The notes under the pieces are model-generated. The model worked only from the letters and a program-made list of their open reading frames with translations, had not been told where the DNA came from and made no database searches. A stretch of DNA of 63,864 nucleotides, counting the filler, from Ministeria vibrans ATCC 50519 (lineage: Eukaryota > Protista > Filasterea): the NCBI GenBank assembly GCA_943704425.1. It is 12 parts of 12 records of this genome, joined end to end, with 100 filler letters (N's around TTAATTAATTAA, not from the genome) between each part and the next. Parts side by side here need not be neighbours in the genome. Positions count along the whole stretch, not along the records: positions 1 to 17,068 come from CALSCP010001502.1; 11 more parts are not named here. One strand, written 5' to 3'. The translations under genes were made by a program, and so were the position numbers. This document shows, piece after piece, positions 1,904 through 48,860 of this stretch. The first letter of the stretch is position 1. Each line of letters begins with the position of its first letter.

Positions 1904-1978
1904 CAGAAAGAGCCGAATCAGAGAGAATGAGTCACATAATACAAAATGGGGTTTGTCAGACTCTCATCACTATTTCTG
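1904..1978 (-). promoter_or_regulatory. SECIS element in the SelW 3' UTR
   Basis: Minus strand: CAGAAA-ua-GUGAU-GAGAGUCUGAC-AAA-CCCCAUUUUGUAUUAUGUGAC-UCAUUCUCUC-UGAU-ucggcuc-UUUCUG. Helix I CAGAAA/UUUCUG, UGAN/NGAN quartet, helix II GAGAG/CUCUC plus UGA/UCA, AAA 11 nt above the quartet. Confidence 0.85.
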
Positions 1979-2029
1979 TGTGTTGTCAGAACACTCTTCT
2001 CGTCACTGCTTCTCTCTCTCTCGATTGCT

Positions 2030-2447
2030 TTAGAGTGCTGCGTTGATCGCAGCCGCAATGGCATCAAGCTTCTCTTTGGTGTCGGCGAAACCCGACCCCA
2101 TTGTTGTTTTGGAATGGACCAAAGTGTCGTTTCTATCACGAATGAGTTGGAGTGAGTGTGGAAAGGGTTTTCGCGCCGCATTTTTTTTTGTTTTGTGCTT
2201 TTTTCCAGTCAAACTTACACAGTCACGTCGAAGAGACTCGTTGGCGTTGGCGTGCCATACGATGTAATCTTCACTTTGTCTCCAAACAGCGCTTTTAGCT
2301 TCGATTCGAGATCTGAGAGAGAGAGAGAGAGAGAGACGAAAAGTGAGAGAAGAAAACTGAGAAGGACGGTTCGCGTGTGCGCTTACCCCTGAACCGACTC
2401 CCGTACCCTCACGATCCACAGTAGACAACGTGTACTTTCACAGTCAT
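2030..2447 (-). CDS. SELENOW: Selenoprotein W (Rdx family), 85 aa, Sec at codon 13
   Basis: Exons 2447-2387, 2312-2219, 2132-2030 (GTAAG...AG introns) give MTVKVHVVYCGS-U-GYGSRFRDLESKLKALFGDKVKITSYGTPTPTSLFDVTVNDTLVHSKTTMGSGFADTKEKLDAIAAAINAAL; TGA at 2411-2409; colinear with vertebrate SelW (VVYCGAUGY...LIHSK...AAIKAAL). Confidence 0.95.
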
Positions 2448-4078: not shown

Positions 4079-4471
4079 TCAGAGAGGCCAGAGCCAGTTA
4101 AGGGCCTTCATGGACAACTCATAGCCAAAGAAGCAAGCGGCATTGGCAGGGAAGGCGCGCGTGAAGACAGGACCAGCCCCCTACAGATACGCCAGACATC
4201 AGCCACACAGAACGATACTGTCCACATGATATACATGACGGCCACTCTTGACAATTTTCCCTTTCAGAGCGAGGCACTGAATGACTCGCATCTTCACTCC
4301 TCTTTTCCTCGATTCTCTCCCAACAAACCCACCTTGTAGAGAGCACCGTAACCCTCCGTAGCAATCAGTTCACGCAGCACATGACGCAGTCCAGTGTAGC
4401 TTTTTATAAAAAGAAAAACAACAAAAAAATAAACATAAATTAATATAATTATATTACAAACAACAAAAACA

Positions 4472-4509
<38 letters not shown>

Positions 4510-5572
4510 TATTGTGTACGTACCGCCCTTCGGGAGCGAGCTGGAAGCGCGTCTTGAGAACATCGGCCGGGAGTGCAACGACCCAGTTGGCAATGCCAGC
4601 GAGACCACCGGCCAGGAGAACAGCGCCAGCATTCAGTGAGTTGGGGTCAGCCCCCGAGCGCGCTGCAAAGTAGCGCTTCGTGCCCTCGTACGCTGCAAAG
4701 TAGGCGCCGCTGCCGGGCACGTCGCGCAGCATGGTTGCCACGCTGCCGCGGTAGATACCGCGCAGGCCCGTCTCGCGATACACCTGTCGCAACACGTCCA
4801 TGGGTCCCGCGTACTTGGGCTTGCCTCCCGCGCTCCCCTGCACCTGCAGTGAAATCTTCACTCGCTCGCCCGGCACCATAATAATCGTCGTGAAAATGCC
4901 CGAAATACATCCAGCATTAAAGATTTGCATCAGATTCAACTGATCCGAGGGGTTCTTTCGCTGAATGCTCTGTCCAAATCCATAGCCAGCAAACACAAGC
5001 GCGTACACTGGTGCAATGCCTATACACACAAAACAATATTCAGCTCGAGCCTCTCCTTCCCATTGCTACACGACGCACCAGCAAGAGGAGCAGCCATTCC
5101 CTGAGATGGTCAAACGCAAAGGATCAGAAACACTGTCATCATAATGAATTGTACAGCAAACATTGACTACCTTGTAGAGTCCGGTGAATCCTTCAGCCTG
5201 CACTGTCTTCTTGGCGCAGTCCACCATTCCAGAGTACAGCGGTGCTTCGCCCGCAACCGACGGCATCGCCTGAAGGCGCACCTTGATCGTGTCCAGCGGA
5301 TGTCCCGACGCCACAAGGCACATGCCGCCAAAGCCACCCGCGACAAATTGCTGTGGAGCGCACACAACGCGTTTTCAGCAAATGCACATAATCACGACGC
5401 TTCCACACGCGCGCAGCATGCAGACGGGTTTAATCATCCACACGCCAACACACAGTTCAACAGAAAGCCCCAGTGCTGAGCGTGGATTCGCACAAACTCC
5501 GGTTCACGTGAAAAAAGGGCACAATACCTTCAACGCTCCCGGCTGATTCTTGTCGCCATTTTCTTCAGACAT
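4079..5572 (-). CDS. SLC25A20: Mitochondrial carnitine/acylcarnitine carrier
   Basis: [66 protein letters not shown]; multi-exon; start MSEENGDK at 5572, stop 4081-4079. Confidence 0.92.
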
Positions 5573-5717: not shown

Positions 5718-8383
5718 ATGCATATTCTTGTGCTTATTGTCTCACTCACCCTGGCCCTCACACATGCCACTGACGTTGTGCACTATGTGAGCATGAACCA
5801 TTTGGACGTTGGATTCAGCTCGTTCAGCGGTGACTGCACAAACTCCTCCGACCACTCGCAGTGCCCCTTTGCTCGCGGCCTCATCCACGACGTTGTCAAC
5901 CGCTACTTCGACGTATACTTTCCACTGGCAGTGGCGACAGCAGAGACGCTGCGCGCCCGTGGCGGCCCTGAACGACATGTTTACACGACTCACTCTTGGC
6001 TGGCGTCGCTCTACCTCGACTGTCCCAGCCACCCCGCGCTGCACTGCCCCAACGCATCGGCACTCGACGCCTTCCAAGGGGCCATACGTCGCGGCGACAT
6101 TACTTGGCATGCGCTGCCTTTCAATGCGCAAGTGTCACTCTTCGACGAGGACCTTCTGGCGGCGGCCGTCGCGCTGACCCACTCGCTGGACGACAGCGTT
6201 CAACAGCCTCACAAGCGAGTCATGTCCCAACGAGACGTCCCAGGGCTCTCAGTTGCCTCGCTACCCACGCTCCACCGCAGCGGCGTCCGTGTGATCTCCG
6301 TCGGTACCAACCCTGCGTCTTCGCCGCCTGCTGTGCCCGCTGCCTTTCTCTGGCACCATTCCCAGCACCCCGACGAACGCATGCTTGCCCTATGGCACCC
6401 ACACGGCTACGGAGGACTCACCACCCAAGACTGCACCATACTTGCAGGTGCAGCTCTCTGCCTTAGCGTCCGTGGCGACAACCGCGGCGGCCCCGCCCCC
6501 TGGGAAGTCCTCAACGACTTTGCCCAACTGCGCTCCGAATTCCCCAACGCTACCATCATCGCATCCTCCTTCGACGCCTGGGCCAACTCTGTTCTTCCTC
6601 ATCTTGATTCTCTCCAATTGCCTCTTCTCACCACTGACATCGACGACACGTAAGAACACCAACCCTCAAAAGAACGACCACAACGCAATGGACACACACG
6701 TCCGCCCCCCCCAAAAAAAAACACAACAAAAAGCAAAGCAAAAAACAAAACAAAAGCAAAAACAAAACGCAATGTACGATAATTTGAACGTTATATAACT
6801 TCTCCAAAAAAAAGAAGAAAAAAAAGCAAAACAATAGCGTAACATGACAAAACAAACTTCAATCATTGTAATTGTACTATAATATTTTGTCACAGTTGGA
6901 CATACGGCATCCCGTCGGACCCCCTCAAACACGCCCAGTTCCGTGCATTTAAACGTGCACGCCAGTGGTGCGTGCGCCAGGTGGCGTCTAGCGAGTGTCT
7001 TGATGTCGCGAACACTCGCGCCTCGCTCGCCCACTTTGACCGATTTCTCATCAAAGTTCCTGAACACGTATGATGCATTATTTTTTCTTCACACATTTCA
7101 TTCACCCTTCTTTTTTTTTTTTTTTTGCTCTTGTCTATAGACGTCTGGAATGGACGCCAAGCGATTTCTGACGAATCTCACTGAAAATTGGACGAACAGC
7201 GAGTTCAATCGGATGCGAGCAAATGATGACAAAGGCTACAGACTGATGGAAGCCAGTTGGCACGACCAGCGCAGTGTGCTTGACTGGGCACTCGCTACCC
7301 TTGCTTCTGACTCACCCCTGCGCATGCGTATCGACTGGGAACTTGCACAGCTCAAGGTGTCTCCAGTCACTGCCACACCAGTGTCTCGTCGTGTCGCACC
7401 TAACGAGCGATTTGACTGTGGCTCATCTTTGCGCATTGGGTTTGACTCGTCTCACGGCTACGTGTCTTATCTTGAGCGCAGTGGCGCTGTTCTTATTGAT
7501 GACACCCAAGACAGCCGCTCGCGGGCGTTTGCGCTGCTCTACCAGACCCTCGACAGTGCCGATGTCACAGCCTTCCTCGACGCCTACCTTGACTGTGACC
7601 CCCACCAACCTGGCGGTGACTGCAACTCCTGGAACTTTGGTCCCTGGCCTCTCTATGACCTTGGAAAGGAGTACGGATAAATCCACATGCAGCGCACGAC
7701 GAACGCATAGCACTTTGATTCTCTTAATAATAGCTATTTTTCTTCTTCTTTTTTTGGGTAGGGGGCTGGCCAAGACACACGCAAAACATTCAGAGTCACT
7801 GCCCACGCTGCAAAATGTGCATCTTGTCCGCAACGAGACGAGTGGCGAGTGTGCGTTCACCATTGATATGGAATTCAATCGGACACTCGCGCGCGACTAC
7901 GGTGCTCCCGAAAAGGTGAAGATGCACTTGACGACACACTCCAACGAGATTGAAGTTGTATTGGAGCTGTTTGCGAAAGGGGCGACACGGTTGCCCGAAT
8001 CACTTTCTCTGCAAGTGCGTCCGACCACGACCGAACACGCGTCGTCTGTCTGGACTATTCACAAGCTGGGCGTGTCCCTCTTGCCCACACACATTGCATC
8101 CAATGCCACGCACCACCAGCACCTGACAGATGAGACGGGCGTCAGTCTCACTCATCATGGCCGTCTCTATCGCTTTGCCTCTCTCGATGTGCCCACCGTC
8201 ATCTTTAACGAGCCTTTGTCGCCTCTGCCCACGCCCCTCAACACCCCTTTCCAGCCCGACGCTGGCTTTGCCTGGAACATTCACAACAACCTGTATGACA
8301 CCAACTACCCTCTGTGGTATCCTTTCGACGAGCAAGACGCCAATTCGCACTTTCGCTTTCGTCTTACACTGGAAGATGTATGA
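5718..8383 (+). CDS. Secreted GH38-like / DUF5054-type putative glycoside hydrolase
   Basis: Signal peptide; MNHLDVGF, ITWHALPFN, MSQRDVPG, GDNRGGP, DTWTYG motifs and C-terminal WNIHNNLYDTNYPLWY; about 4 exons. Confidence 0.75.
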
Positions 8384-8618
8384 AACTCTCACTCTCCTTG
8401 ATTATGTTTATCACTTCTGAGTTGACAGCTCTAGACTTCTAGTTTCTCTAGAGTGAGTTTTTCATCGACTTTGAACGACTGACTATCAAGTTTTATATAC
8501 ATATTATTGTATAGTGTCTTGCTTTGCAATTGATTATTATTATTATTATTATTATTCTTTCTTACATTCTCGTTTTCTATTTACTTTCTCTTACATTATA
8601 CGATACGATACACACGAA

Positions 8619-9012
8619 ATGAACACCACCACCATCCTCACATTGAGACCGACCTCCTTGACAGTGCTGTCCCTATTGGTGCTGCTGTCGTTGTCTGTCG
8701 TTGCGGCTGTTCCGTCCCCGTGCGGTGTCTGCCTTTGCGACGACACCTTCGCCGACTGCTCGAACCGCGGGCTCTCAGCACCGCCTCCAGGCCTTCCAAC
8801 CAACACTACAGTGCTCGATCTAACCTTCAATCGCATCGAGATCATCGACAGCGGCGCACTCGGTGCGTTGTCCAACCTGCAACTGCTCAACATCAGCCAC
8901 AACTTCCTTCTCGTCCTCCTGGCCGACTCCTTCGCCGGTCCCACCAACCTTACCGTGCTGGACCTCTCTCACAACGAGGTACACCATCCAACTTCCACAT
9001 GCAACAAGACGC

Positions 9013-9100
<88 letters not shown>

Positions 9101-12100
9101 CACACACACACACACACTCACACACTCTCTCCTTCAGCTTGTCTTGCTCAAAGGGGATTTCTTGACTCCGCTCAAGTCATCGCTGACCACCCTCAATCTT
9201 GGCTTCAACAAGATTGCAGCGCTACCCAACAACACGCTTGCTGACATTCCTCGCCTCGCATGGCTCTCGCTTGGAAACAACTTCCTGCCTGCCTGGCCTG
9301 CTTCCTTGTCCAGCAGCTCCCTCTCGAGTCTGGACCTCTCCAACAATCCCATCGGCGAGTGGCCCGCACTTCTACCACCGCGCTTGAAATATCTCAATGT
9401 TGCCAATTGTCCACTCAAGTATGTCCCCGACAGTCTGTGCGGGTCGCTGCCCAGCCTCGAGTATCTCTCACTGAGCGGTTGTCAACTTGCCTCGGTCCCC
9501 AATGCTGTCTTTAGCGCCTGTGCCCGCTCGCTCACATCACTCGACATCAGCTCAAACCTTCTCCTCACGCTGCCCACATTGCTCTTTAACGATAGCACTG
9601 CCGCTCTTCAGCTACTCAACGCCTCACACTGTCGTCTCATTGACATTGCCCAGTCGACGCTTGCGCCCCTCTCATTTTTGCGTGTCCTCGATCTCACCGG
9701 CAACATTCTCACGTCATTGCCCACGACTTTATTTAGCTCAACACTCCAACTTCAAGAACTTTATCTACGCAACAACACGCTTGCGCTGGTCGACAACAGC
9801 ACGTTTGTTCCCCTCGCGCCCACCCTTAAAGTACTCAGTCTGCGCGACAACCCCCTGCTAGCTCTGCCCGCCTCCGTCTCACTTCTCTCCTCGTTGCTTC
9901 ACCTCGACATCTCAAGCTGTCTCCTTACCGAATTCGCTCCCGACATCTTTGTCAACATGGTCAATTTGACCTTTCTCAATTTCAATTTAAACCAAATCAC
10001 CACTCTGTCGCCGACACTCCTTTTGAACCTGCGCTCCCTCGAGAGCATCTCCTTTGCCCACAATTTGCTCACGACTCTGCCTGCGTCGCTCTTCGAGGGA
10101 TTCACCAACATCAAAACCCTGCAGTTCCAACTAAATCCCATCTCCGAGCTGCCCGACGACATATTTGCACCGCTCGCCAAGACCCTTCTGGGCCTAAACA
10201 TGGGCAACAGCGTTGCACGCAACATCCCCACAAGTGTCTCCCTGCTCTGCGCCCTTGAAGTCCTCTATCTTGACCAGCTTCTCATCGACAAGCTTGACCC
10301 GCACCTCTTCGACTGTATGTCCTCCCTTGGGCTTCTCAGTCTCACCGGAAACTTTCTCCTCACTTCACTGCCCCCCAACATTTTTGCACACTCTTCCGCC
10401 ATTGTCAACCTCATTCTCTCAAACAACGCCCTCACCTCACTCCCGTCACTTCCGCCAGCCGTCCAGAGCCTCACCATCAGCGGCAACCCTTTTCCACCGG
10501 GGCCTCTCTCCCCCCAAATCCTTGCGCGCCCCTCCCTCCTCGGCCTCACTGCCACCGCCTGCAACATCAACCAAATCTCATCTTCTGACATGGCTCACTT
10601 ACCTGCCCTCGAGACTCTCATCCTTTCGTCCAATCTCATCCAAGACATTCCTAACGGAACCTTTGCCGGGTCGGTCCATCTTGTCGAAATAGAGCTGTCG
10701 TACAACAGCATTCGCACCATTGGCAGCAACGTCTGGCCTGCCCCGTCCCTTTTTGATCTCCGTCTCGCTGGCAACCAGCTTTCTGCGCTTGCTCCCGACG
10801 TGTTTGCCTCCGCCCCGGGTCTCACCAATCTTCTTCTCAGCCAGAATTTTCTCCGCTCTCTACCTCCCACCATCTTTGCGCCTCTCACCAAATTGCAGAG
10901 TCTTGTGTTCCAGGTAAACCAACTGTCATCGCTCGACGCGTCACTCTTCACCCACAACACGGAGCTCCTCTACCTCGACTTCAGCGCCGCCGGTCCCATT
11001 ACCACTCTGCCCGCGACCCTCTTTGCATCCACAACACACATTGAGTATCTCAACATGAACAACATGACACTGGAAGTAAGACAATTAATATGGTTCTATC
11101 ATTCTGAATATAGCCTGTGTTCTCGTAGTCCCTACCATGCGGCATCCTCGATTCCATGCCGCGACTGTCGAGCTTCAGCATTCAGCTTAATCGCTTGCGC
11201 AACATTTCGCTGTGTTGGCTGGCACCCCTCTCCAAGGCGTCTCAACTCAGCTTTGCCGGCAATCAGCTGTCGTCCATCGGTGACACGCTCGCGTCCTTTT
11301 CCAACCTTGAGATTCTTTCGCTCGACTCCAATCTTTTCAGCGTCTTTCCCGATAATCTTCCTGCTTCGCTCAAGTACCTGTCGCTCTCGCAGAACCAGCT
11401 CATCACAGTGAGTCTGGCAGCGCTTGTGCCTCTCACCGAGCTGGTCACATTGGACCTGGCGGGCAACCTGCTCGTGACGCAGGTCGCCGAGACCATTGTG
11501 ACAACGCTGAGCCACATCAACGCCATAAACCTGTCCAACAACCGTCTCACGGGCACCTTCCAGATTCCCATTCACACGTCGCTCAATCTGGCAAACAACC
11601 GCATTGATTATATTCGTCCCGCCGAGCCCTCCACCAACCCGCTGCTCTTCGGCCAGGCTATCATTGTCAACAACTCACTCCCAGCCTTTGCCTGTCCCCC
11701 CGGCACCTACGGCGAATCTCCAGCCTGCTATGGCTTTTGCAGTCGTAAGAAGATCTCGTTGGGGTTAAAAAAATCAAACGAAGGAGATGAATGATTGTTC
11801 TTGTTTTTTTTTTGACATGAAGTGGTCTGTTTGTCGAGTGTCATTACGGACATTGGGCTGTTTACATTTTCATCGTGTTCCGGACCCAATCCAAGTGATT
11901 GTTGTCCTTACGGCCTCTCCGGTAGCAGTTGCCAATATGCGTTTCGGTGAGACAATAAGACAACAGATAATTTGTTAGGGTACTGATTTTGTTTTGTTTT
12001 AGGTGCCAAGAAGGAATGTGTGGCACAGGACGGTGTTTGGACGGACCTGAATCAGATGTGTATGGGCTGCGTTGTGAGTGTCCTCCGTCCATGCTGTCTT

Positions 12101-46437: not shown

Positions 46438-48860
46438 ATGCAACAAGCATCGTACGGCGCTGCGGGATCCCACACCACAGTGGTCAATCCATCACGCATA
46501 CATGACCATATTTACGGTAGGGAGATGGGAGCCCAGCATGCACGCGTTCGTTTCCTTTCTATTCCGTTGCCATTGACGACCTATCCATTTTTACTCCTAC
46601 GCCTCACACACCCACCACAACTACAACTCATTCACACACAATATATTTCTCATCATTCTTCTCCCTGGTCCGTCCCCCCCTGACTCTCTTCACTGTCCGC
46701 TTTTAAAATGGCTTTCTTTCTACTCAATGATCAGACCCAACCACAACATTGTCGTCTCCCCGCGACCACTACCGCGCCAGTGTTCGCTCGCACCTCAACC
46801 AGGCCCATCGAATGCCCACCGACAACATGTTCTCGGAGCTTCAGCACCATCCGCGTGCGACCGTCTCCGTTGGACCCGACAGACCTTTGCCACAGACAGT
46901 GTCGCTGCAATGGCATGACCGAACACACACGAGTGTCACCGAAGCAGCCACACAAATTCGCGATGCTCACGTGTCGGGACGAAATCACGCGCTATACGTT
47001 CGACGACCCATAGTCGGCTATGGTCGTCGAGCAAACATCCATCAGGCGTCGCTGGTGCTCGCGAGTACACGTCAGGCACATTCAAATATTGCAGCGCCAA
47101 AGCGCACTGGCGAGACAGCGCCAACGTTAACGACACGCACGGTGGCATCACAGACAATGTATCGTGAGTCCGAGGCTCAAACCGACCCGTACACACCCGA
47201 GTACACGGTGCGCGAAGGCGAACCGGCGCCCGAAGTCCTCACACTCACCGATTACACATACCGCCACGGCCTGCCAGCGGGGCTCGCCGAGGTGGAAGCC
47301 ATTGAGCGTGCACGCGCTCGACGAGCCTGGGAGGCGTCTTTGCCGCCACTGGGCGAACCGGGTGCCCTTGAGCAACGCCAGCAGATGCTAGCAGAGCTGG
47401 AAATGCAAGAGTGGGCGCGACGCGAAGAGGAGATACGCTCGTTGCAGGAGCAGCGACTCGAGGCATTGCGTGAGCTCATGACGACGCGCACCGATGCAAC
47501 AGCAGCGCGAGGCGAGGACCGCACGGAAGCAGTGTGGCACGCTCAGACACGGGCAATGTGCGAGGCCAATGAGCAGACGGATCAGCGTCGAGCGACAGTG
47601 ATGCGGCGATTGGCGCGCGAGCGGGACAATGCAGAGGAGTGCCAACGACGCAAAGTCGTGCGCGACGAGACGGTCGATATTGTGGGGGCTTATGCGGATC
47701 CGGCGTCGTCAGTCTATGCACCGTTGTTGCGACAGGGTGACGTGCGTACGCGTAGTGTGGAGAATGCGCGGCAGACAGTGCATGGGAGCGCGGCGTTTGC
47801 GTATGGGGGTGGGGTGGCGGGTCGGACGCGCATTTCAACACTGAGTGACTATTCGTCGTTGTGTGCGCTGGAACAATCTCTTCCCTCTGATCTACTTGAT
47901 GTGTCGCCCGAAGAGACACTCACAAATGTGATGAAGAAGCATGCGAGGAGTCGACGGAAGGAGCGAGACGAGAGGAGCTACGCGCAGGCACTGGAGGCAC
48001 TGGACCGACGTGGACGTCATGTCGGGGAGGAAGGGAAGCGCGAAGGGTCACTGCGATTCCTGACGAAGATTGAGCAGGCGCCGGTGCGCCCCAAGACACC
48101 TACAGTGGATGATATTGAGGAGGAGGAGGAGGAGGAGGAGGAGTGGACGGATGAGGATCGGAGTGTGGCGCTGATTCAGCGACTCATGAGAGGACGAAGA
48201 GTGGAGATGGAGATGTGGGAGGGGGTAGAACGACGGCGGGAGCTCATTGAGGAGTTGATGGAAAGTGAGGCGGTGAGTGAAGCCGAGCGGGAGATGGTGG
48301 AGCGGGAAGGAGAGAGGGTGCGCAAGGCGCAGGTGGCGCGCGTGAGGGAGAGGGAGGCGGAGAGGTGTGCAGAGGGGGCTGTGGCACAGGCGGAAGCGGG
48401 GCATGCGGGAGAGCGACTTGACTTGCTTACCAAGGAGTTGGTACGACTGCAAGAGCAGCAGCGAATTGAGGCGATTGTGGCTTTGGCGGAGCGCGAACGA
48501 CGGCTGCGCGAGGCTGAGGAGTCGGGTCGACGAGCAGAGGAGGAGACGCGACGGTGCAAGGAGGACGCGGTGTTTCGTGAGATTGTGCGTGTGAACCACG
48601 AGACTATTGACTCGTACCTGGAGGATGTGTTCTCTGGCGCGGTGTCTCAGACAAGTCAAGTACAGGCGCGCGAGAAGGTGCGCGAGCGAGCACGCGAGAT
48701 TGATCGGGCTGTGGAGGACACGTCGCCCGAGCACACAGTCGATCGACTTGTCCATTCGTTCCTCTTGCCCGAAGTTGTGCGTGAACGAAGGCGTGAAGCA
48801 TCTGCCCGCTCCCAAGGACGTTTCTTGGAGGCGGCCCACAACGAGTTATTCAAAAAGTAA
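46438..48860 (+). CDS. CFAP91: Cilia- and flagella-associated protein 91 (MAATS1)
   Basis: QTMYRESEAQTDPYTPEY, PEVLTL, GLPAGLAEVEAIERAR.RRAWEASLP, IQ-like LIQRLMRGR, AERERRLREAEESGRR. Confidence 0.9.

Follow-up and report, generated by a model that had tools for sequence, protein, structure and literature searches.

A putative three-exon selenoprotein W gene with an in-frame UGA and a 3′-UTR SECIS element in the filasterean Ministeria vibrans

A short locus on the minus strand of a contig of Ministeria vibrans ATCC 50519 is very probably a functional gene for selenoprotein W (SelW), in which the UGA at codon 13 is decoded as selenocysteine (Sec) through a SECIS element in the 3′ UTR (positions 1978–1904). 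A sequence-only reading had taken the in-frame UGA and the SECIS together as the mark of a selenocysteine gene, and that proposal appears supported by the CxxU context of the codon, by the core and layout of the SECIS and by the Sec machinery that the genome encodes. Sec insertion and the redox function of the protein are what we infer from these features.

The window, by which we mean the whole stretch of DNA analysed (63,864 nucleotides, filler included), joins 12 parts of the genome assembly (GCA_943704425.1; 29.7 Mb, 2860 contigs) end to end, and the part with the SelW locus is contig C1502 (CALSCP010001502.1). Positions count along the window unless another contig or locus is named. The same contig carries a mitochondrial-carrier exon (4454–5029, minus strand) and a large LRR_8-rich gene (8514–11794, plus strand) whose two ORFs, 8514–11411 and 11156–11794, overlap in two frames; since these mitochondrial-carrier and LRR genes bear introns, contig C1502 can be taken as eukaryotic nuclear DNA, and it shows no sign of a human origin. 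Positions 197–1102 on the plus strand contain pieces of a gene for a class-V aminotransferase (Pfam Aminotran_5, to which NifS and selenocysteine lyase belong), convergent to SelW and ~0.8 kb beyond the SECIS.

The proposed coding sequence runs over three exons, all on the minus strand. Translation would begin at the first in-frame ATG (2447–2445) past an upstream in-frame stop, and the coding part of exon 1 (2387–2447; 61 nt, 20 codons plus one base) holds the CGSU motif; read and translated directly, it gives MTVKVHVVYCGS, then TGA, then GYGSRFR. Intron 1 (2313–2386; 74 nt) opens with the donor GTAAGC at 2386 and closes with a (CT)n tract and CAG at 2313. Exon 2 (2219–2312; 94 nt, phase 1) translates as (D)LESKLKALFGDKVKITSYGTPTPTSLFDVT(V), the bracketed residues standing at its two ends, and is followed by intron 2 (2133–2218; 86 nt), with the donor GTAAGT at 2218 and the acceptor GATAG at 2133. 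The coding part of exon 3 (2030–2132; 103 nt) translates as NDTLVHSKTTMGSGFADTKEKLDAIAAAINAAL and terminates in TAA at 2032–2030. The three coding segments (61 + 94 + 103) add up to 258 nt, or 85 codons plus a stop, with canonical splice sites and a single internal TGA. Exon-wise translation and this arithmetic thus confirmed the coordinates of the three exons that the sequence-only reading had spliced into an 85-aa SelW, and direct reading likewise placed the TGA that it had aligned to CxxU at codon 13 (2409–2411), in C-G-S-U. An ORF at 2409–2489 terminates at this codon, whereas the SelW model, with the N-terminus M-T-V-K-V-H-V-V-Y-C-G-S-[TGA]-G-Y, reads on to the TAA.

Splice sites of the same types (GTGAGT or GTAAGT with CAG or TAG) occur in other genes of the genome, and the acceptor GATAG is also present in a GPx gene on contig C1971. 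We infer that the SelW gene is transcribed and that both splice junctions are used. Exon 3, when compared with the genome, indicated a single copy of the gene. A reassigned genetic code cannot explain the in-frame TGA, because TGA serves as an ordinary stop in this genome, as in a cyclin-L-like gene that terminates in it. The SelW exons occupy three different frames and form no listable ORF, which is why the gene is absent from the ORF track, where fragments of it are all that is listed. Of the earlier expectation that both the ORF track and a standard annotation would miss the gene, the first part held; the second is plausible and was weakly tested.

Assignment to the SelW (Rdx) family rests mainly on exon 3, with exon 1 contributing the active-site motif. 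Similarity searches of the model were made exon by exon, the exons being 20–34 aa long. Against 177,635 PDB sequences, the best match of exon 3 (33-aa query) was mouse selenoprotein W (2npb; E 0.14), in a collinear alignment that covers mouse residues 56–84 and reaches the C-terminus, and the nearest cluster in the protein atlas was ‘Rdx family’ (score 0.93, 200/256 features). The strongest argument that exon 1 offers is its direct reading, in which an N-terminal hydrophobic beta-strand leads straight into C-G-S-U with Sec as residue 13. In vertebrate SelW, Sec likewise stands at residue 13, and the motif is C-G-A-U. Exon 2 and the piece of exon 1 before the TGA gave no significant match alone in the PDB, the protein atlas, Pfam or NCBIfam. 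The single exons gave zero matches to Pfam PF10262 and to NCBIfam, since 20–34 aa is too short for such models, and a six-frame search of the whole genome with PF10262 also gave zero. A word search with a 132-aa ORF, limited to its exon 3 part, found no database protein with common words, and a scan of metagenomes for a degenerate VVYCGSUGY coding pattern returned 0 matches. The sole return of a full HMMER search with exon 3, a repeat protein, was rejected as a false match. A search for the Sep15/SelM family found none.

The genome clearly makes use of Sec, as the sequence-only reading had supposed in crediting the organism with Sec machinery: a tRNA-Sec, SepSecS, a Sec-containing SPS2, an eEFSec domain and a PSTK candidate were all found. 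SepSecS is spread over five exons, SPS2 carries Sec in the motif G-U-G-C-K-V-P, and the 4th domain of eEFSec was detected at 55 bits. For PSTK, one of two KTI12-family genes fits the PSTK models better, at scores below the curated cut-offs. In-frame TGA codons also stand at the expected positions in two GPx genes and in SelO.

This setting, together with the gene model, bears on the possibility that the SelW locus is a decaying or silent pseudogene, its TGA a plain stop and its product never full-length. That exon 2 is without an independent homology signal would fit such a locus, as would its single copy and the failure of the word search and the metagenome scan to retrieve relatives. A decayed gene would nevertheless have kept its frame open for 72 codons past the TGA, and intact canonical splice sites at both introns on the way, as well as a TGA exactly at the Sec position of CxxU and a SECIS-type element, all in a genome with a complete-looking Sec system and at least four other selenoprotein genes. 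We regard a pseudogene as highly improbable and retain the functional SelW gene as our reading.

The tRNA-Sec gene (contig C2383, 9718–9814, plus strand; locus L001, 1501–1597) scored 55.3 bits, above the Rfam threshold, and was missed by ARAGORN. It combines a 9-bp acceptor stem, a 6-bp D stem and a 4-bp T stem with a UCA anticodon, and a TATA box lies ~30 nt upstream. Directly after CUUCAA of the anticodon loop, 12 nt take the place of a single nucleotide in the model, and UCUUC is able to pair with GAAGA inside this insert, which looks like an intron of ~11 nt placed one base 3′ of the UCA anticodon. Earlier reports of an intron-containing tRNA-Sec were limited, among eukaryotes, to Daphnia pulex, with Lokiarchaeota as the other case (PMC5330540). 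ARAGORN did label another gene, of 73 nt and in an AT-rich tRNA gene cluster on contig C1523 (locus L003, 1499–1571, minus strand), as ‘tRNA-SeC (tca)’; as a nuclear tRNA-Sec it was rejected, and its Rfam score is that of an ordinary tRNA. The most likely identity is an organellar tRNA-Trp(UCA), which, if true, would mean that UGA encodes Trp in the mitochondrion.

The proposed SECIS element (1904–1978, minus strand) starts 51 nt past the stop codon, matching the earlier report of a SECIS-shaped hairpin about 50 nt downstream, and contains the published core and AAA. Helix I (1978–1973 with 1909–1904) lies below an internal loop, above which the 5′ core G-UGA-U (1970–1966) stands opposite the 3′ core U-GA-U (1920–1917). 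Helix II (5′ strand 1965–1955, 3′ strand 1930–1921) abuts the core, and the unpaired AAA (1954–1952) begins 12 nt past the core UGA. Folding gave 8 bp plus a 2×2 internal loop for helix II and 8–9 bp for helix I; the AAA is unpaired in the constrained fold and in the centroid, while the unconstrained minimum-energy structure pairs the third A weakly. The eukaryotic SECIS consensus consists of a UGAN/KGAW core with adenines in the apical loop (PMC3753652). The core of the SelW hairpin, UGAU/UGAU, matches this consensus, and the apical adenines are present.

Further SECIS elements of the genome provided a lineage-specific reference. The GPx element on contig C1971 (AUGAC-GAC...CAAA...UGAU-G, −24.5 kcal/mol; locus L016, 2015–2074) and the SPS2 element on contig C216 (GUGAC-GAC...CAAA...UGAU-G; locus L012, 2584–2639) were joined by that of SelO on contig C313 (locus L049, 1055–1001, minus strand), found by pattern search ~205 nt downstream of an ORF ending in S-U-S-S and a stop. 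A fourth element probably belongs to the GPx gene on contig C2371 (locus L015, 2388–2435). Two of these four carry a GUGA core, and the spacing from UGA to AAA is 12 nt in the SelW, GPx and SelO elements and 13 nt in that of SPS2.

How much weight the SelW hairpin can bear depends on which of its properties are counted. A loose scanner for SECIS-shaped hairpins returned ~1–1.2 matches per kb and ranked the SelW hairpin 38th of 64 on its own strand. The folding energy, −12 to −15 kcal/mol, lies at z = +0.89 relative to shuffled sequences, so the hairpin is not unusually stable. With a scanner rate of about one per kb and a stability no better than that of shuffles, we rejected shape and energy as evidence for a SECIS; the significance of the hairpin comes from its core and apical motifs taken together with its position. 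A descriptor drawn from the literature (R-UGA-N, AA 10–14 nt after UGA and K-GA-W, plus a minimum of 7 bp for helix II, directly adjoining the core, and of 4 bp for helix I) gave six matches in 120.6 kb of background: the SECIS elements of GPx, SelO and SPS2 account for three and the SelW hairpin for one, while the remaining two are weaker and false. This amounts to about one false positive per 60 kb, and hence to a chance of ~0.01 per 500-nt UTR. When lineage features were added (R-UGA-Y, AAA, U-GA-U and an abutting helix), the three bona fide SECIS elements and the SelW hairpin alone passed in 245 kb. The pattern RTGAYGA..CAAA..TGAT matched once in contig C1502 against ~0.04 expected, a figure to be read with the widening of the lineage pattern from C to Y after the SelW hairpin had been seen. 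Estimates of the chance of such a hairpin in the SelW 3′ UTR therewith range over ~0.01–0.04.

Two other sequences that passed such filters were set aside. The hairpin at 7105–7050 (minus strand) is SECIS-like (GUGAA...GGAA, −9 kcal/mol) and is picked up by the literature descriptor; its position is immediately upstream of a DUF5054 gene on the plus strand, with no minus-strand gene recognisable, and was taken as a false positive. A genome-wide pattern search yielded 89 matches versus 9 in a reversed control, most of them purine-rich repeats. Two new matches had a helix: one is the true SelO SECIS, and the other, on contig C1341, is false, its decent helix notwithstanding, being antisense to an ORC4-like exon. 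The 5′ half of the SelO SECIS was also seen as an identical copy on contig C1920 (~47106–47143; locus L056, 1498–1535), right after a run of N and in an unrelated gene region; this copy is probably an artefact of assembly or scaffolding.

Covariance models built from one, two and three SECIS elements of the genome (R1–R3) have low power, and their scores should be read accordingly. With the model trained on the GPx, SelO and SPS2 elements alone, the SelW hairpin came first in the 530-nt 3′ region (10.1 bits, E 0.042), ahead of a runner-up at 5.1 bits, and aligned in the proposed register. Across the covariance models it scored 8–10 bits, which is not significant over the full 34 kb that both strands make up (E 1.4–3). 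The true SPS2 SECIS, when left out of training, scored 6.7 bits with R1 and 11.5 bits with R2. A genome search with R2 retrieved the training sequences and an assembly fragment and nothing else, and MAFFT did not align the SECIS elements correctly. Rfam reported no SECIS in contig C1502 or in the SelW 3′ region even at E ≤ 10. Its SECIS_1 model (RF00031) also found none in the whole 29.7-Mb genome, nor near the Sec-GPx and SPS2 genes; since it misses every SECIS of this genome, its silence on the SelW hairpin is uninformative.

These results also define what can be said for a real SelW gene whose working SECIS lies elsewhere, downstream or in a form not captured, with the hairpin at 1978–1904 a chance look-alike. 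Hairpins of this shape are common by loose criteria (~1.2 per kb), this one is weakly stable with low covariance-model scores, and the GPx gene on C2371 is a case of a SECIS that the scanner misses. In the 1 kb that follows the stop, however, the coding strand offered no second SECIS candidate, relaxed thresholds included. The hairpin possesses all the core and apical motifs common to three other SECIS elements of the genome, its position 51 nt past the stop is plausible, and a convergent gene sets a bound on how long the 3′ UTR can be. We consider a chance resemblance unlikely, with a small share of the probability, and continue to assign the SECIS to 1978–1904.

The sole Rfam match in a 341-nt search of the region was of a different kind, SNORD31-like at 16 bits (E 0.66), and would make the element at 1977–1914 a box C/D snoRNA with GUGAUGA as C box and CUGA as D box. 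Both RNA classes have a kink-turn formed by UGA and GA, and because this motif is common to them a SECIS can present itself as a sub-threshold C/D-box look-alike. The score is far under the gathering threshold of 40 bits, and both boxes are present, yet the terminal stem that would directly flank them is absent. The element moreover belongs to the predicted 3′ UTR, not to an intron, and the gene concerned carries an in-frame TGA. Its AAA spacing and helix II layout are SECIS features also found in the elements of GPx, SPS2 and SelO, all of them without a C box. A snoRNA is extremely improbable, and the element is best read as the SelW SECIS.

Taken together, the gene would work as follows. Two short GT-AG introns would be spliced out of the SelW pre-mRNA, and UGA at codon 13 would be recoded to selenocysteine during translation. 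The SECIS, with its kink-turn (GUGAU and UGAU, with tandem G.A/A.G pairs) and its apical adenines, would be the binding site of SBP2, which would bring eEFSec and its Sec-tRNA(Sec) to the ribosome. The predicted product is a small thioredoxin-fold redox protein of the Rdx family whose active site is CxxU.

Annotation systematically gets selenoprotein genes wrong, as it takes UGA for a stop. The SelW locus is a clean worked example, in which three short exons in three frames leave no listable ORF and nonetheless yield a SelW with a SECIS, and it adds one gene to the selenoproteome of the organism beside SPS2, two GPx and SelO. As a gene it is of a well-known type, and knowledge of SelW or of Sec decoding is unchanged by it. 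More unusual are the genome-wide invisibility of the SECIS elements to Rfam and the apparent intron of the tRNA-Sec. Given that the Rfam SECIS model is without sensitivity in this lineage, surveys relying on it would call the organism Sec-free. We tentatively suggest, at somewhat short of even confidence, a lineage-specific Sec system, with SECIS elements of an unusually conserved primary sequence, R-UGA-Y-GA...C-AAA...Y-UGA-U-G, that often have a GUGA core and are invisible to Rfam, a tRNA-Sec with an intron of ~11 nt, and SelW as one of several unannotated selenoproteins.

The SelW element and its counterparts in GPx (C1971), SPS2 and SelO have in common R-UGA-Y-G-A...C-AAA...U-GA-U and a helix II placed directly against the core. 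The SelW element differs in having UGAU-GAG and UGAU-U where those elements have UGAC-GAC and UGAU-G, and their helices are stronger (−17 to −25 kcal/mol versus −12 kcal/mol in SelW); two of the three also form an apical mini-stem. Relative to the canonical eukaryotic SECIS, the potential for tandem G.A/A.G pairs, the unpaired AAA, the presence of helices I and II and the predicted 3′-UTR position are all alike. The SelW hairpin departs from it in that its UGA is preceded by G rather than A, a trait that the SPS2 and GPx-C2371 elements also show, and in its large apical loop (~21–24 nt) and the 2×2 internal loop of helix II. Its apical pairing amounts to at most 2 bp, whereas a clear mini-stem is seen in the elements of GPx and SPS2.

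At the level of the protein, the putative M. vibrans gene resembles eukaryotic SelW (SELENOW; Rdx family, PF10262; mouse structure 2npb) in its size, here 85 aa, in the N-terminal hydrophobic strand leading into CxxU, and in a UGA-encoded Sec at residue 13 with a 3′-UTR SECIS; its C-terminal helix region aligns with residues 56–84 of mouse SelW. It differs in the motif, C-G-S-U here, and in a similarity too low for single exons to reach the Pfam and NCBIfam thresholds, while the division into three exons by introns of 74 and 86 nt is particular to M. vibrans.
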